Shown: positions 42,349 through 61,945, counted from the stretch's first letter. The stretch is 64,000 nt of DNA from Lepidodermella squamata (GCA_047495785.1 JBLDXI010000048.1:496001-560000); one strand, 5' to 3'. A program made the numbers and translations. The notes: a model not told the origin generated them from the letters alone.

Positions 42349-45300
42349 TCACTGCTTCACACCGACGCAAAACGTGCGAATTTGCATCGGCCGCATTGTG
42401 ATTGAATCCCAATTACCATTGGCGTGTTGGTTCTCTGCAACAGCCCGCTTGATACCCATCGGATCAGCTTGCGATGGCCAGTTCAATCGGACCAAATCAG
42501 AGATTGGCATGTTAGCTCCGAGGGCGAGTTCGTTGATTGTGATCATATTAGGGTCGGAAACTCCTAATAAGCTTTGAACAAAAGCCAATAGATTGACTGT
42601 AGTATCCTGAGACCATTTAGCATCTTCGTTGATTTCGAACAGATGTTCAAGCCGCAGCATGGCAGTGCAGTTCTGGAAGTTCCGCTCCAAGGTCATCAGA
42701 TGAATGTTTGCCGGGAGAATCGGAGGATCAGCAATTTGAGAAACGGGTTTTCCCATTGAAACCTGGAAGAATGAAATTCAGCATTACCACATCGCAATTT
42801 CAAAAACTCACCATAGGGTGAAGGCCAGCTTCTGACCATTCTTCCAAGCTCGAGATGGGGGTGAAGGCCAGTGTTGGGCCATTCATAACTGCTTGGCTTA
42901 TCTTCCGATAGTTGACAGCAGCATTGGCCGGGGAGTTCAAAGTGATTCGAATGTGACCAGTGGCGACTAGGCCCTCTCCGTTTTCAGTCTCAAGAAGTGG
43001 CTCGCCAACTCCGAAGTTATCGTCGTAGGTCAAACGCCGATGGACCATGAGTTCAAGAGTTCCCTCTCTAAATCCACTAGCACCTTGAGCTCGGTCAGTA
43101 ATAGCTGTCAACTGAGCCATTGAGTCGCGTGTGCTGATTCTCGCAACGATTGGGTAGTAATTTTGGGAGACATTCTGAGTCGGCTGTAAGGTCCACGTTG
43201 GTCGGAAATCTTTCTTTCTCTCCAACATTTCACGACCATTCGCGTCGGTCAAGAATAGATCTTGATTTTTGATTGAAGATGAAAAGATCGACACAACTTC
43301 TCGGCCGACAGTTGTTTCGTCCCTAACGTTGCCAAGATTGGTCGGAATTTGACCGACAACCCATTGAACGTCGAGACTTGGCTCATTGGAATACAAACGA
43401 TAGATCGACTTGGCCCAGGAAGAATGCTTCTTGTGAAGTTCGACAACCTGATTGCCAACAATCGTAAAAGTTTCCCCGCCTTCGCTTTCATCGAACCAAT
43501 GGAGGTCGTTGGCATCTGGAGTGAATCGATAAGCGCCAGATGTTGGAGCAGGGGGTAGAACTGTTGTGTAGTAAGCCAAGGCATGGTTGAATTGGATCGA
43601 AACTTTATCATTCGAGTTCTGTAGGCCAGCAATATTACCCCTTTCGTCCAAAATCAACTGAAGGATGCCGTTATTAATTGATTGCTTTAACCCTGCAACC
43701 GGTTCCTTTGGCAAATGTTCAAGCGAAGAAGAGGGCTTGATGAAGAAGGTGCTAGCTCCAAGAGCAGGTAGGTTGCCCTTGAAAACCAACTCGTGAGTAG
43801 CAGTTGAGTTAATTCTGGTTGGAATTGATCCGATATCAGTGTCCAAGATCGGGATCAAGTCACTAATCAAAACGGCGCCATTCGAATCCATGACCTTCAT
43901 ACCCATTCCTTTCGGAACTTCAACCGGGATCCTGAGCCAATACATGTGATTCTCAGCCAATCGATTGTAAGCGATGACTGAGAAACCCTTATCCGACATC
44001 ATTTCACTGGCTGGGCAGTAAGTTTCGTTCAAAAGTGGGCAGAAAGTAAGTTGAGGCATTGCGCAGGTTGATTTTTCCTTGCAGAGAATCGATTGATAGG
44101 TCATTGCTGAGATATTATGAGCAATTGCGATTGATTTCGACGCCCGTAATCTAGCGTCATCAGTAACGTGCTGCTTCGAAGTGCCTGAAACAGCATCGTG
44201 ATGAGTTAGGATTCCAACAGTATCTTCGACATAGTCCATTCTCGGATCATCCGGGGTTTTAGGGCTGAAAGTCAGTAGTTGACGGACGGTGCCATAAGCA
44301 TTGTTCAACTCCCTAACAATCCCCTTCAAACTTGGCCGAGAGGTGAAGTAACCCGTCCAAAATGAGGCAGCCCCGTCAGCATATGGGAAAAAGTCGTCAG
44401 ATTTTCTAGCCAAAGGTTTTGGGGCCAGCTGATTAACAGCTCGGGTGTAGCAGGACGGAGATGAGTAAAATGCATAGAAATCATTAGACTGATTATTCAA
44501 GTTACGAATCAAGGCATCCATGTTCAAGAACCAAGTCGAGGCTGAGATGTAGTTGAAATCGCAACCCATTGTTACCATAATATTCGGAGTGGGGTAAACA
44601 TCTTGCTGTTGTTTAAGCCAGAACGAAAAGACGCCCAGTCTCTCGGGTACATTATAGTCCTCCAGATTAGGATCATCCATAATAGGGTCGTCATTTGAGA
44701 AAACGTCCCAGTTGAAACCACCAGGTGGGCAGTAAGTTGTACCAGGGAAAGCGCTGGTGAAGATGTTGAGGTTCAAATCTGGCGTCGATGGGCGCAGCTT
44801 CCAAACCAATTCAGTCGTTTTATTCCGTTCACGAAGTTGCCGGTCTTGATAGTCAAGACGAGCGAAGAACAGACCATTCATGCCGAACTCTGCTGATAGC
44901 GACGCCAATTCCCTCGAATGGCCGAAAGGGTCGATCTGCCAGGCGATTAATGGCGTGTAATAAGGGTCGATTTCCGTGCGAATGAAGTCGAAACCCAGGG
45001 TATGGGAGTCTACCAAAGCCCCGTAATCAGTCGTAGCCTCATCAGCCATAGCCCAGCCAGCGCAGACAATTTCGAGCTGGCCATTTCTCAAGACCTTTCT
45101 GAACAGATCTTTCATGGTATCAGTCTGGCGACGCCACCATCTCTTCAGAAATGCCATTTCAACCTGAACGTATTTTCGGCTGGGGTTCATCGACAGGGCT
45201 GTAATCGCTGAGTCGATCGTGTATTGAACTCCAGCGTTTTGAATGTCATTTCTCGCGCCGTAGAAGTACTGATCAACAGTTTTCAGCCAGCCAACATCGT

Positions 45301-45610
45301 CATGAGAATGAGGAATGATATGGACGTTTGTCTTCGTGGTCGAAAGAGGTGGGCAATGCTCGTCGTGCAATCCCTTATTATAGGGCGATGGGTCTTCCTT
45401 CGGCTTTTCGTCATGGTGGTGATGCTTATCGAGAATTGAGCTCATTTCGATATCGCTGGTCATCCAAAATGAAGTTGTGATTGCCCCGAGGAAAAATGAG
45501 GCGAGGATTAGAGCAGTAATCAAAAGACAGTGCCAGCATTTTTGCCGGTCTGGTTTCACCAGATGGCTGTGCTTGTGGTGGTAGGGCAACCACTCTTTTG
45601 CAGTGGTCAT
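42349..45610 (-). CDS. MAN2B1: GH38 alpha-mannosidase, lysosomal MAN2B1-like. Exons 45610-42812, 42762-42349
   Basis: HSHDDVGWLKTVDQY, WQIDPFGHS (nucleophile D), TMGCDF, WTGYFTSRP, HHDAVSGT, LELMVHRR, LRLEHLFE, MRPMQIRTF; single 49-nt intron. Confidence 0.92.
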
Positions 45611-50235: not shown

Positions 50236-52463
50236 TTTTTAAATGAGTATTTTTTTGTTGCTCTACATTTCTTTGGTGTTTTTACGCGTAGAGATAATCT
50301 AGGTATTAACCGCCCCCACAGGTAGAAAAAAGCTGAAATGTCTCCAGCTGCACTGATTTTCCACGCGATTTGCTTGAAATCAGAACGCTGAAAAAATAGC
50401 TTTGAGAAAGCGAAAATAAACGGCGGTTAAATGAAGCTTTTCAAATTCTATTCTCAGCGCAATAATTTATTCTATAGATTTGCCCTCCCGAAGGCCGAGG
50501 GTGAAAATTGCAAAATCTTTCCGGCTGAAAACGGTTACAGATTCCATCTGATTCTCAGCTTCGGATGAACAGCTAAAAATTGAGCGAAACTGGGCGAAAA
50601 AATAGAAAATTCGCGCCTCGAATCTTTTCGACATGAAGGAATTTTGCACTTCTACGTTATTTTCAAACACCAATTTTGAAGCATGGTTTGAAGCATGATT
50701 CGAACTTTGGCTAACTTTCAGAAGTTTTTCAATTTTGTTGGGGTCAAGTTTGGGTCTTACCTGTGTATTTACAACAATTTTTTAATTATTTTCAATTTTA
50801 TAAAAACTTATTTACTGCCGCTTTTTGGAGTTGCTCTATTGGCTCCATTTCATCCTGTTGTTTGCCAAGGAGGCAGCTGAATTTTCACCGTTATAGCGTC
50901 CAGCTCTTCATATGTTCTGTCGACCAGCTATAATATAGAAAATTCATTGAACAATTTATTTCGCTAGGTTTTAGCTTTTGTGTCTTTTTAACGCCGGGAA
51001 AATGAGACAATTTTTTGTGTTTTAATGAATTTGGAATATTTTTTTTAGAAGAATTGACGAAGTTTTACTTGTCCCACTATTTGGGAGCTTAATTCACCGC
51101 TAAGCAAGGCGTTGACAGACTAATTAGTATTGCAAGTACCGAAGTGGTTTTTTCTGTTAATTCAGCGTTAAGTAGACGCGAGAATAATTTCAAATGACAG
51201 CTCTCGCCTTCAGTTCCTTGAATCTCCGCTCGCGATCAAGTCGTCCTGATACAATCGCTGTTAAAAAAAAATGACCTCAAACGTGTTCCTCTTTAAGCTT
51301 CTTAGTCTTAAAGTAGGTGGAGTCCTACAATTGCTAACTGAAAAAGCGCGGCCGAATTTTTCTATAAAGACGTAGATAAGTCTTGTTAGGCCGCACACTT
51401 GATACAGAATTTGTGTCTCTCTTAGTCTTTTGTCTTTGGGACGCAGATTGGGCCTCATTTTCTGAGTTCACCACCACTTCTGTTCGCCCGCCCATTGTTT
51501 TTACAATCAGACGGAATTGCGTAATAATCAATCACTCAAGCAGACTTGGCATCACAGTGACCTATCTCATTAGTGACAAGTTGGCGTGTTTCAGGTCGTC
51601 ATAAACTGAAAATCCACGTGGCACAAATTTAGGCACACGTTTTTTTTCCACGCATTTCCGATTTTTCAATCACATCTATTGAACACATTTCTCCGAAAAT
51701 TAGTGAAATGGCGGTGACGTCTTCCTACGCTTCTAAAACTGTCCCAAATTTTTCACCCAGCTCTAAGTGTCAAGCTTTTTATTATCTTAACGACAAGCAC
51801 ACATACACACCTCATTTCAACACAATTGCGCGATCAAATAAAAAATCCGCCTTAATTTAGCGCAATTTCTCAGTTACAAACAGCCGTTTTCACTTGACGA
51901 GCAAAATACGTTCAATAAAATCCGAGTGCGTTTTTGTACTGTATGCTTGTAGTATAAGCAATACAGTGTGCTTATCACGCGAATAACCAACGGCGACGTA
52001 CATTTTCTATTATTATGCGTCATTAATAAGAATGTGAGTACTAGGCAAGTTGCGCGGTGCAAAAGCCTTTCATTTTCATCGTGCGTTCGCTCGTCGTTTT
52101 TGCGTTATTTCTCTCCAGCCAGCCACACACACACACACATACAGCTCAAGCCACGGAGTGATAAACACGCTTTTTCACAATAAAACTCTGCTCTATTTTT
52201 GGGACCCTGAAGAGCTTTGTAAGAACTTGTAGTTATTATAAACTGGCCAAGTTTGAAATACTCATACCTCGGTTAATTTTTATCACGTAAAACGCGATTT
52301 AATTAGCTGTAGCTTATCCCAAACGTGGCATCGTCGTCTAAAATTTCAACAAAAATCGATGTCAAGAAGTTTGTAATCGTGTTATACGTAGGCTTTAATA
52401 TCATCTGCTGGTTCATTCATGTCACGCTGAGGTTTTCTCAAACGAAATTCTCGTTACAACAAC

Positions 52464-55400
52464 ATGGATTCTGACGATGGCGATTCTAACCAAGGCGGTG
52501 CTTTCGATACTTCGAGCAGCAGCGGTCGGAAAATGAGTAGCGGCGGCTCCGGCGAAAAAGCCGTTTGCTTGGTGTGCTGTCGCGAGTTTAAACTACCGCC
52601 GGTTGCAAAAATCGTCGGCGGCGAGTCGCTGATTACGCTAGAAACCGGAACTAGCGACGACTTGTCGGCTTCAGCGCGGCGAAATCGCGGCAAGAATGCT
52701 ATCTGCGGCGCTTGCAAGGTGTGTTTATTGTTCAAAGAATTTTTTAATATTTTTCTCAGTCTCTTGGTGGCATAAAAAGTACCTTCAGCATCTAGTTCAA
52801 TTCATAATTTTATTCAGTTTTTATTCGAATTTTATTCAGAAAAAGCAGCCAGTTTTTTAGGATTAGCATTTGAGATAGTTTTTCATTTCTCTCCTGGAAT
52901 TGGACAATTCTGAAGTTTTTTCTTCACACTTTCTTGTTTTTTTTCCAAGTTCAAAATTTCGCTAGAATCTCCCTCGGGTTTTGCGTCTTAAAGATGGCCA
53001 TTTAATAGGCGACCCATGTCCCTTTCTAGCCGTTGTTATTCAAATCATCGATCATCACGGGTATTTTTCTCGCCCGTTCCTTTTATTCGTCGCTATCGAT
53101 TTAATACGTTTGGGAAAAATTCTAGCTAAAAATAGCACGTTTGATTAATTAATGAGACATGCGATCAATATATGCGTCTGGTGCAAACGCCTTCAGACCT
53201 GCATCTAGAAGGCGAAATCTGAAGTTGAGATCAATATTTAATTAATCTTAATTGTTGAAGTGATGCTGGGAAAGGACGCTTGTTTCAATTCCGTGATTGA
53301 TGTCGCTCCAAAATTAGGAGAAATCGCCATTTCTCCCTTAACAATAAGTTTTAAGACGGATTTAATCCGGCTGACATAAATTCCGTGTTTCGTGTTGTTG
53401 AGAGAAAAAAAATGGGTCACAGCCCTAGCGGAACCAATTTTTACTGGAAGTGGACATTTTTTTGCTATTAAGTATGCAAACTTGCAATAATTTTTTTCAT
53501 AATATTTTCATTTTAGTTTTTTATTACAATTTTTGCGGTAATTTATTTTTTGTTTTTTTTTCAGAAATTTTACTCGCGTTCGAAGGCGTCGAATTCGAGC
53601 ATTTTCACGGAGAAATGTTCGTGCCCTGAGGTGCGGTTGCAGCCGAACCCGGCGACAGACCGCAACGCCGACGGCCGGGCTCGAAAACTGTCGACGAAAC
53701 ACATGTGCCGGGCGTGCCGGGCGCGTCGCTGCCACGCGGCGATGATCGACTCGAAGAGCCTCGATGACTCGGGCATTGACGTGTCGCAGCTAGGCGGCGG
53801 TGCTGGTGATAAAAACAGTGATAATAGCGGGGCGGCTGGTACTAGTTGTAATAACGCTGCGGCAAGTAGCCACAACAACACTTCGTCGCAATTGGGCCGC
53901 ATGTCGTTGAATTCGAATAATAATAATAACAATAATAACAATAACGATAATGAGTCGTCGAATGGCGAGGACGACGGCGGCGATTTGGCGCCGACGCCGG
54001 GCGTCCACGCGCCCAATGGCGAGCGCATCAACGTTCGCATGATTCCGTGCGAAATCTGCGGCGTTTCTAGTAAGTTTTTTTCTACAGTCGAAAATTCAAA
54101 ATTGAAAAATGAATTTTTGGATTTTTTTTTGGTTCTCTAAAATTTTTAGATATTTTCATTTTGCAGGCGAGAATTTTTTTTAGAAAATTTTTACTTCTAG
54201 AAAACATTTTATTTTACGTTCTCAGCCTGCCTACTCAGGGCGAATTTTTATTATTTTCAAATGAATGACTCCGATTTTAGTCATGTGACGCTAATATTAC
54301 TGCTTTCGAAAGAAATATTCTTAGTAATTAACGAATTTCCTATCGTATTCCACTCAAAAATCGCGTATCCAGACGATTTTACCGAATGAATTTTTAGGGA
54401 TAGCTGCAAAATTAAAGGAAATTTTTAATATTATCTGATTCGTTTTCTTTTTGTTTCGCCTTATTTCCTGCAATTATTCAAAAAAAATTGCATCTATTTT
54501 CGATCGAAATTGGGGTGTCTGTAACCTGAATAGGCTCTTCTTGTTGTCTTTCTTATTCATTGTTATCGATCATGCCTTGAGTAAATTTTTCACTCGGCTC
54601 TCTTCATTTCAACGCAATGTAAGATGGCTATCATGTTGAAGCTGTCCGCTCTCGGCGCGGACAACAAGTCATTAGTCGCGTTTGTAAACTTGCGCCATTG
54701 TTTGATAAGCTGCTCGTAATGCCGTGTTAAGCGATGATGCTTCAATAATTCATCCACAGGTACTCGGCTGCCGCATTATAATATAGTGTCGCGACAACAT
54801 TTGATAATGATGTAGACGGTTATTAGCGTTATTTAAAACAGCTGGAAGCTAGCAAATGGACCATGAAATTTCAGCCAAAATTGAAAACTTGAAATGCGAA
54901 ATTAAGAAAGATAAAAAGAAAAAGACCTAACAAACGCAGCATAAAATGGTAAAATTGTAAAAATAAATCCGAAAAAATTCCCGAATTCAGGCGGAATATA
55001 ATTGCGAAGCGGCAATGAAAATTCGAGACATTTTTGTTCGAAAGTTCTTTTCCAAAACTTTGAGTATATTGCATTCAATTATCTGAAAATTTCAAATACC
55101 CAGCTTGACGAATATCGTGATCAATTTCAAAATATTTTTGGTGCTAATCTTTGAGATTTAAACCCGTCAAAAAAATGTCCGGCTTATTCGTTGATTTTTC
55201 GGAAAAATTTCATCCGTGTCCTATCGAACTAGTATAACATCTATTTTCGAGGCAAAGTTTTGCCCACGCGTTACCTAAAGATCGAATTTCGGCTCGTTTT
55301 TATCTCGTAACCTGAAGCTTTTAGGACATTGGACATTTTCTCGATTTCTAATCTAAAGTACTCGAGTCTCGAGTATCAATTTAGCGAAATTGTTGGTACT

Positions 55401-58400
55401 TGAGTGCCTATTTTTAGGCTGTACTTGAACATACTTTAATAACTTATTTTTCATCCAAAATGTCCGCGTGAAAAAATTAGGGAAAATACCATTAATTTTT
55501 TTAATTTGAAAACTCGAATAAATTAAAAAATTTAAAATTCAATAAAAATTCTCCACTCTTTTTTGTAAATTTTTGAAAATTTAATTTTGTTTATTTTTCT
55601 CCAGGTAGTGGCTATCACTTCGGTGTGATATCTTGCGAAGGCTGTAAGGGCTTTTTCCGCCGGTCGATATCTAAAAAAACGCCGTACAAATGCAAGTTGT
55701 TAGCCGTGAAGCCGGACGCGAGTGTTACCGAGCGCACGACTCGCGAGCACCAGATGAAGTGCAAAAAGTGCCGCTACGACGCGTGCATCGCCGCCGGCAT
55801 GTCGTTGTCGGCCGTGCAGACGGGGCGGCATTCGATGCAGCGCAAAATCGAAACGTCGGCCTACGTGAAACGCCTCGCTGCCGAGAACAAACTGCTGACG
55901 TCGCCGATTCTACGCGGCTGTGCTAAATCATCGGTTATTCCAGGTAATTATTGGAAAAAATAGAAAAATCGCTGCCAGGACAAAATCGCCGTCCCTGATT
56001 TCTAATTTTGCAAAAAATCTTAACAATAGTTTTTTAATTGAAAATTTGAGCATCACCCAATTTTCTTCCGTGAAATGTAATTTGCGCATAACAGCAGCCG
56101 ACGTAATAGCTATTAATCCATATGGCGTCAAAATAGCGACGATTTATTAATATCATTATGAGTTAGCGACATAACAGCAAATATGCACAATAGCAAAGCA
56201 GCAAAACAGCGAGTCATAAATTTTATACAAAACAAAGCATAAATTAATTAGTCAACAATTCTAAGGGAATGTTCCGATTTTTGTCTTTTTTTCATTTCAA
56301 AGTGTAAAACAATTGTCACAAGGTGCGCTTCCAAAGATTTAAAATCATTAAGTGATTCAGTATCAAGCGACGAGCAAATTTTTTTGCAAAGCAAGATTGT
56401 GTTTCACTTTGGCTGGGTAGGACCGCTTATATTTCTCGCCAGCCGCGCGAGCCATAGGTCCTGTTCTTTTAAAAAGAAGGAGAGAAGCTCGTATGGCGAG
56501 GGGTGGGGTTTTTCTACGAAGTCCTAAAAAACTTTGTGCTCCACTTCGGCCTCGTTGTCCGTGAGGGGGCAGGCCAGCCAAAGCGCGGGAAAAGCAAGTC
56601 CATATAGCCGGATCGAAGCGCGGCCGATGGGTCAGCTCGCCGTGATGATAAACGCTGATGTACGTTTCCTGAAAGTACGTATATAGGCGGGTCAAACCGG
56701 CCGCCTCGTGTTCCGCCGCGATCTTCGCAATTTGCGCGTCGAGTGCGTAGAAGGAGCTCGCTACTCGGTCTAACGGCAAAAAGGCAAGCGCCGCCAGATA
56801 TTTTACACCACCTTTTAACAACGACATTGGATGAATACAAGCCTTGCAACCCGTAGGCAACAACACGGCGATAAATGGCCTAAAAATAATAATACATTTG
56901 ACAACAGGCTTTAATTTTAATTTTTTACACAACCTGACAAAGATGGAAACAGCACGCCAAAATCATCGCATTCGGCCACGTTGTTGCTATTGCTGCAATT
57001 GCGGCTGGCTCGAAGTCGAGCATAACTTGATCGAAGTACAAGTCAGGTACTAACAGGCGCAGATTGTGAAACAACTTGTCGCAGATCGGCCCGTCCTTAC
57101 AGGGGAGAAGGGCGTAAGCAACAGGGAACTGGGCGCCCTCAGTAACGGCGTGTAACGTGTATACCTGGCTGAAGAGAGTTGGAGAAATCCAGAATGTCCC
57201 ATCCCCGGACATGCGGCGACAGCCCTTAAACAGCTCAAGCTCTAAATTGCGAATTATGAACCTTAAAATGGTCTCATTTATTCGAAATGGACATGAACCA
57301 GGAACTCGGAAAAAGTTGCGAATTATCTGGATATGATGTACCGTAACGAGTGGTAACTTTGGACAAAACGTGTTTTTCGAACATTAAAAATCAGGCTTTG
57401 CTCCTAAATTTCTGAAATTTTTACCAAAGGTGGGGACGGTGATTCTTGAATTTACTGCAAATTCTAGAAATTTTGAGAATTTTACCTGACCTTTGGCTAA
57501 TTAATATGTGTTAATTAACAATTAGAGGGTAGTTTTGGACACTCATTTGCATATGCAGTTTCATTGCAATTTCATTGTGAATTATCTGTTTTTCATGGTT
57601 TTCATTTAATCTTGGGTCAGATATCGAAAAAAATTATGAACAGATGGCGCATCATCTGTTTCTCGGAAGTTCAATAAAAATACGTTTCTGCGCAGCAGCA
57701 TAACCCGTCCAAAAGTGTCCAAAATTACCCCAATTTTCACCTGTTTTTCAGGTAAATGTCCTGCTAAAACGCGTCGACGGATTGTCATTTTTTCTTCGAT
57801 TATAGGGAGAGTAAATATAGGAGAATGCTCATGCCAATTTTTATTGAAAACTGTTCGATTTTTAGAAAGATAGAAGGGGGGTTACTTATAAACGGCACCC
57901 AAAGTCTAACTGCTTGCAACTTTTTCTGAAATTCGATTTCAGCTCCAATCGTCTTGATTTTTATGTCAAACGAAAGCTGAAGAGACGGAGAATTTTATGT
58001 GAAAACCCCCATGATTTAAACGTTCAAGCCTGAAAAGCTGAACACCTGCAAAGCCGAAAGTGTCCAAAGTTACCGTGTCCACAATCAACACACGTTACGG
58101 TAATTTGGCTGAATTTTCCTATTTGGATTTGAAAAAATTGCTATTAAACGGCTGATATTGAATTTTTCAAAATAATTTTACCAAGCCTACTCTGTAAAAA
58201 AAAGTTGGCTATTTAGCACTTGGCATTTAGCACGGCCGGTTATTTAGAATAAAAATTAGAAAAATTTCGAATCGCTAAATACCGGAAAACTATTTAGAAT
58301 AATCGGGGGTTATTTATCACTAGTAACATGGGGCAAATTTGAGTTTGGGGTGTCCAAAAATAGATAACTAAGAAAACCCGCCATTTTATACTTTTTACTT

Positions 58401-61400
58401 AAAATTTGGTATTTATCGCCTGGAATTTAATTTCTTGGTAATTAGAAGCTTAAATTAAAATTTGTAGGCTAAATAGGAGGCTCCCAGGGTCCTAAATGCC
58501 CGAGTAAAAGTCGGTTATTTAGCGGCTAAATTGCGAACTTTTTTATAGTGTAATGATTTTGATAAATCTATTTTTGCGATTTTTGCGATTTTGTTATCGA
58601 TCAAAGTAATAATTCTCGGCTTAAAAAACGATCGTAACACATCGGTATCAGAAATAAACAACGATGGCGTGGCACTGTCGTAAATTAATTACAGCCGTGT
58701 CCCGATTTACGAAGGGCTTAAGCTTGACGGGGGTCAGCTTGAGCCATTATTTGATTATGACCATTTCCTGTGTTGCGGATGGTCATCGCACGAGGTGCCC
58801 GGGCAGAGAGTGAAGAAACACAATTTATCCCAGTGATTACATTTCTTCCCCATCAGTATTTCTTTCCGACTAATTTGCTGAAAACAAGTCAACGATGAAG
58901 CGGAAAATTAGTAGGTACCGTTTTTTCGAGTATGCAAGTGAGCATCCTAAATTAACCTAAATTAACTCTGATTAATGCAAAAATCAGGTAAAATTCGTAG
59001 AAATCGCCAACATTTTCAGATAAATCGGAAATACAAATTTCTGAATTTCTGATTAATTTAAAATTCTCAAATATTGTTTAGTCCCAAAATATCCGGTTTT
59101 TGTTTTGGTTTTGAAATAGAAAATGCTAATAATTTTCTCATTTTTCTAGGCCGGCGCAACATGGATGAAATGTCGATGAGTCAGGACGACGGAACGACGC
59201 CTGCGTTCAAGGAAGAAATGCGATCACCCGAAGGCGCGTCATCCAGCTACAACAGCAGCCACCAGCAGCAAAACCAGCAGAACCAACAGCATCACCAGCA
59301 ACAACTGCTTCACAGCGTGCCGCCGGAGACAGACGACGACGATTCGGTCGACGAAGACGCGCTGATCGACGTTGACGACGACGGCGAGGACGCGAGCCCG
59401 TCGACGTTGTCGCTGACGATATCGCAGCCGCCGTCTGTAGTCACCCTGGCGTCGCCGAGCGCCCTAGGCACGCCATTGTCAGGCCGCGGCGGGTTGACAT
59501 TCAACGGGTTGGACTCGCCGTCGAACAACAGCGCCGAGTTGTTGGCTGGGTTTGGGGGTAGTAGCAAACGGCTGAAAGCTGATTCTCTACAGCAAGAACT
59601 GGCGTCAACAATAACATCAGCGCCTGTTGATCAACAGGTTGCGCCGTGGCGGTCGTCGATGACAATGGGTGGTGGGGGTACGAGTAGTAGCAGTATTGGT
59701 ACGGCTACGATGACGTCGACGGCGAATTTCGGTGGGCAGTTGCAATTTACGACGGCGTTCAGTAACCACCTGCAGGCCGCTACGGCTTCTGGTAGCAACA
59801 ATCCGATGTCTCAGCCGGGTACGAGCCATCAGCTTCACAGCCAGCAGCAGCAGCAGCATCCGCTTCACCACATGCCATACCAAAATCCAGGTAATACAAT
59901 GCGTTTGCAATAGGTTTTTTCGAATCAAATTCCTAATATTTTTGAAAAATCTGTGAAATTTTGTTTAAATTTAGAGTAAGAGCTCTAGATTTTTTCGATT
60001 TTCGACTTTCTCGTCCTTCCTAGAATCTAAATTTTTTAATGTCTAACCGATAAATCTCTCTATTACGCGTATTTTGCGCTATCGGCGGTCTTTTTACGAT
60101 TTGTAGTTTGGCCTGCAGAACCGATATCGATTTCAAGTATCGGTTTTACAAATCAGTGATTTTTCCGATATCATCAGTCTAGAAAGCAACCAACGAAAGT
60201 TTTTCTACCTGACTGATAATACCAGGTATAGCTAGAATAGATAATCCGAGGGTTATCGGGTCATCAAAATCACTGAAGAAAAAGCCAAAATAGGAACAAA
60301 TCTGATCAAATGAGTGCTGAACCCTCGATTTTAGTGGTACAATCGCAAACTTTGTAGTATAAATTGAAAACATATTTTGGAATTGAGAAGAATTTTTTTA
60401 AATATTGGGCTCAAAATGTTCGAAATGTATTAATTGAAGATTTTCAAAGCTGCATTCATAGAAAGGCAACCCGCGTCCCTTTCGTCAGATTTCTCAGGGT
60501 TCAGATGTTCACCTTGAAAGAATCCTTTATTTCACACAATAATTTCTCTATGGCTTGAAACTGCTATAAATTTTAGCAGCATTTTGCTCAGAATTAGCCT
60601 CAGAATTAGAATTCTTGAGATTTTTTATTCGAATTTTTCTTCTTAATCTAATTTGCATTTTTTCTGAAATTTCTGAAATGTGAATATTATTATTTTTGGG
60701 CTATTTGTCTAAAATATATGTTTTTTTTTGTTTCAGGCATCCAAATGCCGCTCGCAATGCCTCCACCGTCGGCTCTGCAATTTCTACGCGTCGATTCTGT
60801 CCAATCAGTTGCACAGCGGCTGCTCGAATCGAACGCGTACCTGACGAGGATAACGGAAGTGCCCGAGTTGCACCTAACCTTCGACATGGACCCGCTCGAA
60901 GCGTGGACGTCTGTGATGCACCACCTGTTCGATTCTTTCGTCAACTCTGTATCCTCCTTTGTTCGGCTACTGCCCGGTTTCCGCGAACTTTGCCAAGCCG
61001 ATCGCGTTGTTTTATTTACTCAGGTAATTTTTTATTTTATTTTCTTATTTATCTGCAATTTTTCCGAATTTTGTTTTTTTTCAATGCTTCGTCAAGAATT
61101 TTTGAAGAAATATTGTTGCTCTCTTGCAGGCGTATTTCCCCATCTTGGTTGCGCAGTTGTCGCTGTCCTACGACATGACGTCACGCACGCCAAATTTCTT
61201 CTGTGAGTCGACGCCTGAAGCGCGTGAAATGCTCAAATTTCTGCTGTGTGGCCCCGGCGACATGCTCGAACGGCAAATGAACGACGCTGGGCTAACAATC
61301 TCAACGTGGAAGCCGAACACGGTAATAATAATTCGCATTTACACTTTTATTGCTTGCTGTTGCTCTCGCATCTTTTGACCTAGTGCGTTTTGAGGTCCTC

Positions 61401-61945
61401 GCATTCTCGCATCTTTTTTATTGCGCACATTATTATTTTAAGGCGGACTTTTTATTTATTGTTTCTTCGTTTTTCAGCTCGAATTTTCGCTGTTTTGCGG
61501 CCTGCTGTTTTTCGATCCGTCCGTGCCTGATCTGCAAGAGCCGGAGAAAGTGCGGCAAATCATGGAAGCGTACCGCATGGCGGACGAGACTTTCAACGCG
61601 CAGCGCAATTTAGGCTCATCATCATCGTCGTCCGATCCGTCTTCGTCGTCGTCGTCCAACTCATCGCAGCAATTAATGTCAGCGCCTCAACGCTTCTCAT
61701 CACTCGTTCGGTACATGAAGCCGATGTACCAATGGCTGGGCGTGGTTATGAAATCGATTGAAGCCGAAAGGCCGGATTTCGTCAACGTGCACCCGTTGTG
61801 GGCGGAAATGCACAAATATTTGACGCGGAAATTGCGCAATCACCCGAACATGTTCCGCGTCGAAGGCGAGCCGTTGATCGACGACAACAATTACCCTTCG
61901 TCGTCGGCGTCGAATTTTCACCCGCCATTGATCAACAACAGCTAA
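52464..61945 (+). CDS. Nuclear receptor with two DNA-binding domains (2DBD-NR-like). Exons 52464-52718, 53565-54069, 55605-55943, 59150-59890, 60737-61023, 61130-61321, 61478-61945
   Basis: DBD1: CLVC...CGACK|KFYSRS...CSC...CRACRARRC. DBD2: [28 protein letters not shown]...CKKCRYDACIAAGMS..AVQTGR. LBD signature FVRLLPGFRELCQADRVVLF, LEFSLFCGLLFFDP, AF-2-like HPLWAEM. Splice phases consistent. Confidence 0.88.
56400..57241 (-). mobile_element. MULE transposase relic containing a spliceosomal intron, inside nuclear receptor intron 3
   Basis: DGTF..SPTLFSQVYTLH..PVAYALLP.K..DFEPAAIAAI..CCFHLCQ|AIYRRV..GL; YFQETYI; PLTDNEAEVEH (RTNNxxE-like). Frameshifts downstream. Confidence 0.85.
57341..58100. 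mobile_element. TA-flanked MITE with CCGTAACG termini
   Basis: TA|CCGTAACG...CGTTACGG|TA; GGTAACTTTGGACA-like motif repeated near the left end and inverted (GTGTCCAAAATTACC, GTGTCCAAAGTTACC) internally and near the right end. Confidence 0.8.
58190..58550. mobile_element. TA-flanked non-autonomous element with CACTGTAAAAAA-type TIRs
   Basis: TA|CTCTGTAAAAAAAAGTTGGCTATTTAGC ... GCTAAATTGCGAACTTTTTTATAGTG|TA; repeated TATTTAG motifs. Confidence 0.65.
60043..60250 (+). repeat. Dispersed repeat, copy 1 (copy 2 at about 63472-63680)
   Basis: Shared CTAACCGATA..TATTACGCGTATTTTGCGCTAT..CCGATATCGATT..AAATCAGTGATTTTTCC. Confidence 0.8.

Follow-up and report, generated by a model that had tools for sequence, protein, structure and literature searches.

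The window analysed here, a 64,000-nt stretch of the Lepidodermella squamata assembly (GCA_047495785.1 JBLDXI010000048.1:496001-560000), contains on its plus strand a seven-exon gene (52464-61945) that appears to encode a nuclear receptor carrying two DNA-binding domains (2DBD-NR). The spliced frame stays open through 928 codons to a TAA stop, every exon boundary has GT..AG, and the predicted order of the protein is A/B region, first DNA-binding domain (DBD1), 105-aa linker, second DNA-binding domain (DBD2) with a GRIP-box extension, Q-rich hinge, and ligand-binding domain (LBD). We consider it likely that the locus is an expressed, selectively maintained 2DBD-NR (NR7, A type) in a previously undescribed sister branch with a remodelled first DBD, operating by the mechanism proposed below. 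Its identity, homology, and maintenance as a 2DBD-NR family member, taken on their own, leave us with little doubt.

The locus encodes an expressed gene. Reads from two public runs (X1 and X2) contain it, and run X1 is RNA-like, with deep coverage on exons, low or zero coverage in introns, and contigs that skip introns at GT..AG. The splice junction that an earlier note on this DNA had claimed between 52718 and 53565 is seen in a 171-nt X1 contig, at GT..AG (reported as 52716->53563, a tool shift of +2), with 46 letters on the exon 1 side; another X1 contig spans 52403-52700 in the exon 1 region. A 2273-nt X1 contig joins 54069 to 55605, also at GT..AG (shorter side, 255 letters), and the letters at its loose end (55944), CCGGCGCAACATGGATG, are those with which exon 4 begins (59150). 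The 1521 letters of this contig past exon 3 match exons 4, 5, and 6 plus 301 nt of exon 7 as a fit of length only, and we infer junctions 4/5, 5/6, and 6/7 from the open frame and LBD homology. Within exon 2, at 53658-53687, the 171-nt and 2273-nt contigs share sequence, and their depths are similar (46 versus 36). An origin of exons 1 and 2 from another gene was ruled out by the overlapping spliced contigs and by the presence of the first CxxC of DBD2 in exon 2.

Splicing these exons reveals the hidden zinc-finger DBD that the earlier note had read there, with the P-box CGACKKFY followed by CEGCKGFF, and this layout is borne out in the 928-aa model. Finger 1 of DBD1 is C35-x2-C38-x42-C81-x2-C84, and its P-box is divided between exon 1, which ends in TGC GGC GCT TGC AAG/gt, and exon 2, which begins with ag/AAA TTT TAC (here and below, slashes mark intron boundaries). 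The four cysteines align on the four invariant cysteines of canonical finger 1, the ~29-residue insert sits after C-x-x-C-x-x-x in the alignment to canonical sequences, and the two hydrophobic residues preceding Cys3 are retained. By the alignment, all eight zinc-ligand cysteines are retained, and so are the part of the recognition helix that follows the P-box (C-x-A-C-K-K-F-Y-x-R) and helix 3 (C-R-x-C-R-x-R-R-C); the Glu of the P-box is replaced by Gly. The lengths given earlier (a finger 1 loop of 42 residues versus 13, a finger 2 of C-x-C-x27-CxxC, and a 105-aa linker with poly-Asn) were all exact on recount, and the norms stated there (CEACKK/CEGCKG, a short linker of ~20 aa, and a finger 1 loop of 13) agree with the published survey (PMC10497141).

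Finger 2 of DBD1, which reads C-x-C...CxxC, has ~18 residues beyond the canonical number between its first and third cysteines, and two descriptions of it are possible. In one, the D-box may have shrunk from five residues to one (C-x-C), with expansion between Cys6 and Cys7; in the other, canonical Cys6 may have been lost and replaced by a new Cys two residues before Cys5. The relative L009, in which C-x9-C follows C-x-C-x-C, favours D-box shrinkage, and the canonical Cys6 column aligns to Gly122 (MAFFT) or Asp121 (hhalign) in DBD1. As read from the alignments, both descriptions leave four cysteines available. The linker contains a run of 10 Asn (53916-53945), and the inter-DBD distance is ~100 residues by the published measure. 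The poly-Asn tract, made of AAT and AAC codons, was skipped as a repeat in the read comparison; six letters are gapped in the X2 exon 2 contig, and the tract may differ in length by two codons between haplotypes or strains.

The placement of the gene does not depend on DBD1. When exon 3 was searched against 1.84 billion representatives, its best matches were mostly proteins, dozens of them, that carry CEACKKFF and CEGCKGFF ~87 residues apart; these are classical 2DBD-NRs, found in acanthocephalans, bdelloid rotifers, a monogenean, a nemertean, and bivalves. A maximum-likelihood tree of the region from DBD2 to the C terminus, which is independent of DBD1 and was built with a “quick” method that leaves the deeper forks weak (83-88), puts the window in a smallest well-supported set of 50 rows (98% SH-aLRT). 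That set comprises 31 A-like and 10 B-like 2DBD-NRs, five remodelled genes, and four unclear rows (metagenome open reading frames [ORFs] with one visible DBD). The nearest neighbour of the window's branch in this tree, as its sister, is the canonical A group (CEACKK/CEGCKG), whose own support is 99%.

Comparisons of DBD1 itself point in the same direction. A DBD1 profile built from the window and four relatives aligns with canonical first DBDs at an hhalign probability of 98.1% (E, 9.7e-14) and with second DBDs at an E of 1.4e-12, and the spliced N terminus gives a single-sequence E of 5e-4, with colinear alignment, against a hidden Markov model (HMM) of canonical first DBDs. In a DBD-only tree, a set supported at 98% holds the five remodelled DBD1s together with 46 first DBDs of canonical form but no second DBD; this tree has long branches and so was counted as supporting evidence only. 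Under the same long-branch caveat, monophyly of the first DBDs is not rejected by the approximately unbiased (AU) test (p, 0.38). Lineus longissimus and Adineta vaga have, in their canonical 2DBD-NRA genes, an intron at a place identical to that of intron 1 (phase 0, after the Lys following Cys4, TGC AAG/gt...ag/AAA TTT). This intron, by which DBD1 is hidden, is thus ancestral for 2DBD-NR genes and no peculiarity of the window gene. We identify DBD1 as the first DBD of a 2DBD-NR because the profile match, the DBD tree, the tree of DBD2 and LBD, and the common intron agree, and the two-DBD nuclear receptor proposed earlier stands by descent (a 98% clade outside DBD1, a 98% grouping of the DBDs, and a common intron position). 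A nematode-type supplementary receptor or a fused gene model was ruled out by the tree, the P-box, and the intron position, all of which tie the gene to NR7A.

The introns of the Lineus and Adineta 2DBD-NRA genes (L091, 3803-3832/5987-6016 and ~6590/6965; L090, 1820-1846/1902) are in phase 0 and lie right after C-E-A-C-K of DBD1. Lineus also has an equivalent intron after C-E-G-C-K in DBD2, and this pair is consistent with the two DBDs having arisen when a DBD with an intron was duplicated in tandem.

Features of the receptor gene in the window (positions counted from the first letter of the 64,000-nt stretch)
Feature	Position	Strand	Content and basis
Exon 1	52464-52718	+	Start codon, A/B region (34 aa), finger 1 of DBD1 as far as CGACK (C35, C38, C81, C84); ORF and donor AAG/gtgtgt
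DBD1 Cys2-Cys3 stretch	52578-52703	+	42 residues (canonical, 13), i.e., ~29-aa insert; alignment to canonical DBDs
Intron 1	52719-53564	+	846 nt, GT..AG, phase 0, directly after the Lys following DBD1 Cys4; X1 contig joint
Exon 2	53565-54069	+	Remainder of DBD1 recognition helix (KFYSRSK), DBD1 finger 2, linker, first CxxC of DBD2
DBD1 finger 2 and helix 3	53616-53732	+	C103-x-C105-x27-C133-x2-C136-x4-C141 (KCSCP ... MCRACRARRC); aligns to canonical finger 2
Linker C141-C247	53733-54047	+	105 aa, rich in Asn/Ser/Gly/Asp; 20% Asn, 14% hydrophobic; composition count
DBD2	54048-55801	+	Split by intron 2; C247-x2-C250-x13-C264-x2-C267, then C283-x22-C306-x2-C309; Pfam zf-C4 5e-17 on exon 3
Intron 2	54070-55604	+	1535 nt, GT..AG, phase 1, within DBD2 finger 1 loop (CGVS/SSGYH); X1 joint
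Exon 3	55605-55943	+	Remainder of DBD2, C-terminal extension with GRIP-box-like QTGRHS (55817-55834)
Intron 3	55944-59149	+	3206 nt; X1 loose end
Exon 4	59150-59890	+	247-aa hinge rich in Gln, Ser, and Asp; 5' junction from RNA, 3' end predicted from GT and open frame
Exon 5	60737-61023	+	LBD; GT..AG and single open frame
Exon 6	61130-61321	+	LBD; GT..AG and single open frame
Exon 7	61478-61945	+	LBD, stop TAA; GT..AG and single open frame

Finger 1 of DBD2 has the canonical spacing and an EGCKGFFRR helix. Of the second DBD with CEGCKGFF described in the earlier note, the P-box is confirmed, but the domain is not fully canonical, Cys6 having been lost from finger 2. His302 lies in EHQMKC of DBD2, and the two closest relatives keep a His four or five residues before Cys7 (LHQSKC in L005 and EHSMKKC in L009), so that a Cys3-His zinc site is possible on sequence grounds; the more distant relatives L001, L006, and L008 keep Cys6, with a D-box of 9-10 residues. 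The closest solved DBD is that of Rev-Erb alpha (NR1D1; PDB 1a6y, 3.2e-15), which resembles DBD2 in its EGCKGFFRR helix and GRIP-box extension (AVRFGR, versus AVQTGR in the window). Rev-Erb alpha has a single canonical DBD with a finger 2 of C-x5-C-x9-C, whereas the corresponding stretch of DBD2 has 22 residues and no Cys6. After DBD2 the window reads GM-SLSAV-QTGRHS, in which the five-residue pre-grip SLSAV and the G-R core are kept. The G-box of 2DBD-NRA proteins is RxGRQ(P/S), after a five-residue pre-grip following DBD2 (PMC10497141); in the window Gln stands for the first Arg and His for the Gln, and the relatives have RTGRHS or KTGRHS.

The LBD, from exons 5 to 7, carries an almost complete Ti signature, FVRLLPGFRELCQADRVVLF at 60958-61017, which has two misfits to (F,W,Y)(A,S,I)(K,R,E,G)xxxx(F,L)xx(L,V,I)xxx(D,S)(Q,K)xx(L,V)(L,I,F), namely Val for A/S/I and Arg for Q/K. 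An AF-2-like LWAEMH at 61796-61813 agrees with the hydrophobic-x-Glu AF-2 pattern. By BLASTP the LBD matches P0001 (7e-43, 35% identity) and P0010 (4e-32), and canonical 2DBD-NR LBDs were also matched. Pfam Hormone_recep has no match on the LBD exons of the window scanned separately; it matches the relative P0024 above the cutoff and P0001 weakly, and it is on record for P0134.

The closest proteins come from ENA metagenome assemblies (P0001/L005, P0134/L009, P0010/L001, and P0033/L008; samples ERZ23486764, ERZ23486787, ERZ27332993, and ERZ27333047). They had been called as single, prokaryote-style ORFs, and their first DBD was overlooked for that reason; reading their DNA reveals it. L005 has LLCGACK/intron/KFYTRCK...KCTCP...MCWYCRYQRC, with the Gly P-box and the intron place of the window, and L008 has CQVC-x19-CEACR/intron/KFYCRF...QCKCP-x11-CRFCRFQQC. 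L001 reads CQ/48-nt intron/VC-x45-CEACKKFC...KCAC-x25-CRWCRFRRC, and L009, on a contig without the upstream exon, /KFHGRIK...CICTC-x9-CRKCRFDRC. The P0010 ORF reads through the 48-nt in-frame intron (L001 2661-2708, gtaagt...gttaag), and once this is taken out the C-Q-V-C knuckle of DBD1 is restored; in animals with small introns, features of this kind are concealed when genes are called in the ORF style.

Where their sequence can be read, these relatives share the pattern CxxC, long loop, C[EG]AC[KR]KF, KCxC, loop, CRxCRxxRC. At readable positions there is little or no variation in the eight Cys, in K-F-aromatic-x-R (helix 1), or in C-R-x-C-R-x-x-R-C (helix 3), and the invariant Cys and Arg columns of finger 2 and helix 3 are found in the window, L001, L008, and L009, as well as in L005. 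DBD1 cysteines are readable and kept at all eight positions in L001 and L008, at six in L005, and at the last four in L009, with ~30% identity in the region. The intron 1 position is common to L005, L008, and L009, and the exon layout to L005 and L008. The P-box Glu is kept in L001 (CEACKK) and L008 (CEACRK). The finger 1 loop is 19 residues in L008 and 45 in L001, compared with 42 in the window; the finger 2 loops of the relatives have 9, 12, 21, and 25 residues, compared with 27; and their linkers have 25, 39, 50, and 58, compared with 105, that of L001 being of canonical length. The window is thus extreme for the finger 2 loop and linker and near extreme for the finger 1 loop. Compared with the sister-branch relatives, it is alike in the remodelled DBD1 wherever readable, in the Gly P-box with L005, and in the Cys6-less DBD2 with a nearby His with L005 and L009. 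It differs from L001 and L008, which keep Cys6 in DBD2 as well as the P-box Glu, and in the size of introns 1 to 3 (0.8-3.2 kb, compared with tiny introns of ~50-260 nt). Read across these sequences, the remodelling appears as a feature of the clade and not as one unique to the window gene, which probably has an orthologue in a distant relative.

Further members of the branch were not recovered in other collections. A word-index protein search with the DBD1 region of P0010 matched only itself, a scan of JGI metagenomes with the remodelled finger 2 alignment gave 599 pattern matches with 0 confirmed, and a JGI scan with exon 3 gave only distant receptors (<=50% identity) and no new orthologues. 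The 2023 survey of 2DBD-NRs contains no lineage like the remodelled branch (PMC10497141), and we found no description of it in the literature.

All 11 coding differences between the window and runs X1 and X2 in exons 1 to 3, eight of them in exons 1 and 2, are synonymous, although only ~23% of the sites in these exons are. The DBD1 module is therefore maintained and not decaying. The statement in the earlier note that the Cys ligands were kept while the geometry changed is upheld by cysteines that are conserved wherever the relatives can be read, one of the points on which that note had staked its reading, and by variation that is synonymous only. Run X2 contains two haplotypes at about half depth each, with single-nucleotide polymorphisms and small indels in the introns (52700-52760, 54920-55020, 55400-55440, and 55970-56030).

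By the published norm, in 2DBD-NRs CEACKK is followed by CEGCKG with 17-22 aa between the DBDs, and in most of them both DBDs are C-x2-C-x13-C-x2-C, C-x5-C-x9-C-x2-C, with “very little exception” (2023 survey, PMC10497141). The window resembles 2DBD-NRA (NR7A; Schistosoma mansoni 2DBD-NR alpha/gamma, Lineus longissimus XP_064621747 [P0059], and Adineta vaga UJR16012.1 [P0015]) in xACKK followed by EGCKG-FFRR, in the DBD1 intron after CxxCK, in the five-residue pre-grip and G-box-like motif, in the near-complete Ti signature and AF-2-like motif of the LBD, and in both tree placements. It differs in the finger 1 loop of DBD1 (42 versus 13), in finger 2 (C-x-C-x27-CxxC versus C-x5-C-x9-CxxC), in the first P-box residue (CGACKK versus CEACKK), in the inter-DBD distance (~100 versus 17-22 residues, a five-fold lengthening), in the absence of Cys6 from DBD2, and in a DBD1 that Pfam misses. 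Its descent places the gene in NR7, closest to the A group; the usual P-P module, finger spacings, and linker length are not found in it.

Structure prediction was run with AlphaFold on the translation of each exon separately, with an alignment and without zinc. In the exon 1 model, block-mean predicted local distance difference test (pLDDT) values are 76-84 at the CGACK end and at the CxxC knuckle, which forms two short strands, and 45-48 in the insert. The exon 2 model has helices at residues 2-9 (KFYSRSKA) and 49-67 (RACRARRCHAAMIDS...) with block means of ~72-88; its finger 2 loop has a pLDDT of 50-56 and the linker 40-53. The DBD1 inserts and the linker are thus predicted to be disordered.

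Several observations weigh against our reading of this gene. The two zf-C4 hits that the earlier note had expected were not obtained: with the exons scanned separately, zf-C4 (PF00105) has no match on exon 1 or exon 2 at E values up to 10, DBD1 being too diverged, and only exon 3 was matched. Pfam also finds DBD2 alone in the relative P0010, even though DBD1 is contiguous there from CEACKK onward, and the HMM from 47 canonical first DBDs scores just 6.7 bits on the spliced N terminus. The SG-HYG of finger 1, which in canonical DBDs packs in the core and contacts the phosphate backbone, is replaced in DBD1. The model of the exon 2 half-domain has no meaningful PDB match by Foldseek or VIA-align, as expected because it consists of half a domain plus disorder. 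The junction between exons 1 and 2 is represented by the single 171-nt contig. In DBD2, finger 2 (55691-55786) lacks canonical Cys6, and therefore even its anchoring role is an assumption. Finally, we know of no DNA target for any 2DBD-NR, canonical ones included.

The mechanism that we propose begins with DBD2, which, with its P-box EGCKG and GRIP box, would anchor on an AGGTCA-type half-site. The receptor probably acts as an LBD-mediated homodimer, by analogy with the 2DBD-NRs of Schistosoma and Echinococcus, which homodimerise (PMC10497141, PMC1810520). DBD1 would fold as two zinc modules around two helices and, held by a tether that is long and flexible, would give the receptor a second reading head. 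The survey suggests that the usual linker of 17-22 aa imposes tight spacing (PMC10497141), and a disordered tether of 105 aa would relax the spacing rule between the two sites.

The residues of the DBD1 helices that match canonical DNA contacts appear to be kept, namely the Lys next to Cys4, the Arg in FYSR, and a helix 3 that is basic. The position at which Glu has become Gly in the P-box distinguishes ER-type from GR-type receptors: the steroid receptors (GR/AR/PR/MR) have C-G-S-C-K-V, the first position of which helps discriminate AGGTCA-type from AGAACA-type half-sites, and P-box swaps were reportedly made by Umesono and Evans in 1989 (reference 40 of PMC10497141). Because the substitution falls at this position, it may alter the half-site preference of DBD1 rather than abolish its binding. 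The window resembles the steroid-receptor P-box in the Gly at the first position followed by a small residue and C-K; the likeness is limited to one position, since the rest of the P-box is of the 2DBD-NRA type (ACKK), and there is no phylogenetic link to NR3C. That DBD1 still contacts DNA seems plausible from its sequence, at a confidence slightly short of even. The earlier note had suggested for DBD1 either a new specificity or a role in protein interaction, and both of these stand as inferences.

The strongest rival is that DBD1 has left DNA binding and become a zinc-stabilised module for protein interaction or regulation, either a dock for cofactors or an intramolecular regulator of DBD2, with its loops as functional surfaces. 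The loss of both SG-HYG, which contacts the backbone and packs the core, and the base-reading Glu would suit such a role, and the spread of loop lengths among the relatives (19 to 45 and 9 to 27 residues) around fixed cysteines fits a scaffold presenting variable loops; purifying selection is compatible with any function. However, the best-conserved part of the module consists of the DNA-contacting helix residues (the Lys after Cys4, the F-Y-x-R Arg, and the basic positions in CRxCRxRRC), the loops are predicted to be disordered and are poorly conserved in sequence, and a Gly at this P-box position is established as allowing DNA binding in steroid receptors. We regard this rival as credible but, on the whole, unlikely.

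A further step within the DNA-binding reading is more speculative. The branch could be a new structural version of the DBD, in which the zinc site of finger 2 is rebuilt (C-x-C stands for C-x5-C in DBD1, and a His may replace Cys6 in DBD2), both fingers of DBD1 tolerate long disordered inserts, and the Gly P-box makes DBD1 prefer another half-site than DBD2 does, so that one receptor would read two types of half-site at variable spacing through its 105-aa tether. Taken as a whole this is a doubtful proposition, with perhaps one chance among several of being right. If true, such reading of two half-sites would be a mode of DNA recognition that has not been described for any nuclear receptor.

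It also seems quite improbable that DBD1 is a decaying relic, no longer folding or functioning, carried in a long disordered N terminus. The absence of a Pfam match for DBD1, spacings that are non-canonical with about half of the module predicted to be disordered, and a partial model that finds no structural match are what a relic would give. Against this, the eight cysteines and their flanking basic residues are invariant wherever relatives are readable despite an identity of ~30%, the variants in exons 1 and 2 are synonymous in eight of eight cases, both exons are spliced in frame into mRNA, and the helices are modelled with moderate confidence. Highly improbable is a receptor whose main product starts downstream with one DBD, exons 1 and 2 normally lying outside it and their join being minor or artefactual: the join is indeed seen on one 171-nt contig with 46 letters in exon 1, no single contig covers exons 1 to 3, and contigs show neither transcript starts nor levels, but the exon 1-2 and exon 2-3-4 contigs overlap (depth, 46 versus 36), a product without exon 2 would have an incomplete DBD2, and L005 and L008 have the same exon layout.

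The nuclear-receptor DBD is among the most rigidly conserved protein modules of animals, and this gene departs from its published norms. With DBD1 taken as the first DBD of a 2DBD-NR, the branch keeps eight cysteines and two helices under purifying selection, alongside great changes in its loops, its D-box region, a base-reading residue, and the tether. Coming from animals that have been little sampled, it offers a natural experiment on the indispensable parts of a DBD. It also bears on what the first DBD, a puzzling feature of 2DBD-NRs, is there to do. Receptors of this kind are wrongly annotated as having one DBD, since an intron divides the first DBD and Pfam does not see it. The locus itself adds RNA-proven junctions from exon 1 to exon 4, an intron marker that ties DBD1 to the first DBD of the family, and the most extreme linker and finger 2 loop seen.

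Other features of the window lie within or near the gene. A relic of a MULE-type DNA transposase, consisting of two adjacent ORFs on the minus strand (56363-57212; Pfam MULE, 2.9e-07 on 56928-57212), sits in intron 3 and probably accounts for part of the unusual 3.2-kb length of that intron. A short (CA)n microsatellite at 52123-52140 lies ~330 nt upstream of the start codon, in what may be the promoter or 5' region. Farther upstream, a GH38 lysosomal-type alpha-mannosidase is encoded as a single 936-aa ORF on the minus strand (42803-45610). It is ~40% identical to mollusc, brachiopod, nemertean, rotifer, arthropod, and fish proteins alike, and its sole closer match (57%) is a metagenome contig from a sample that also holds receptor relatives.

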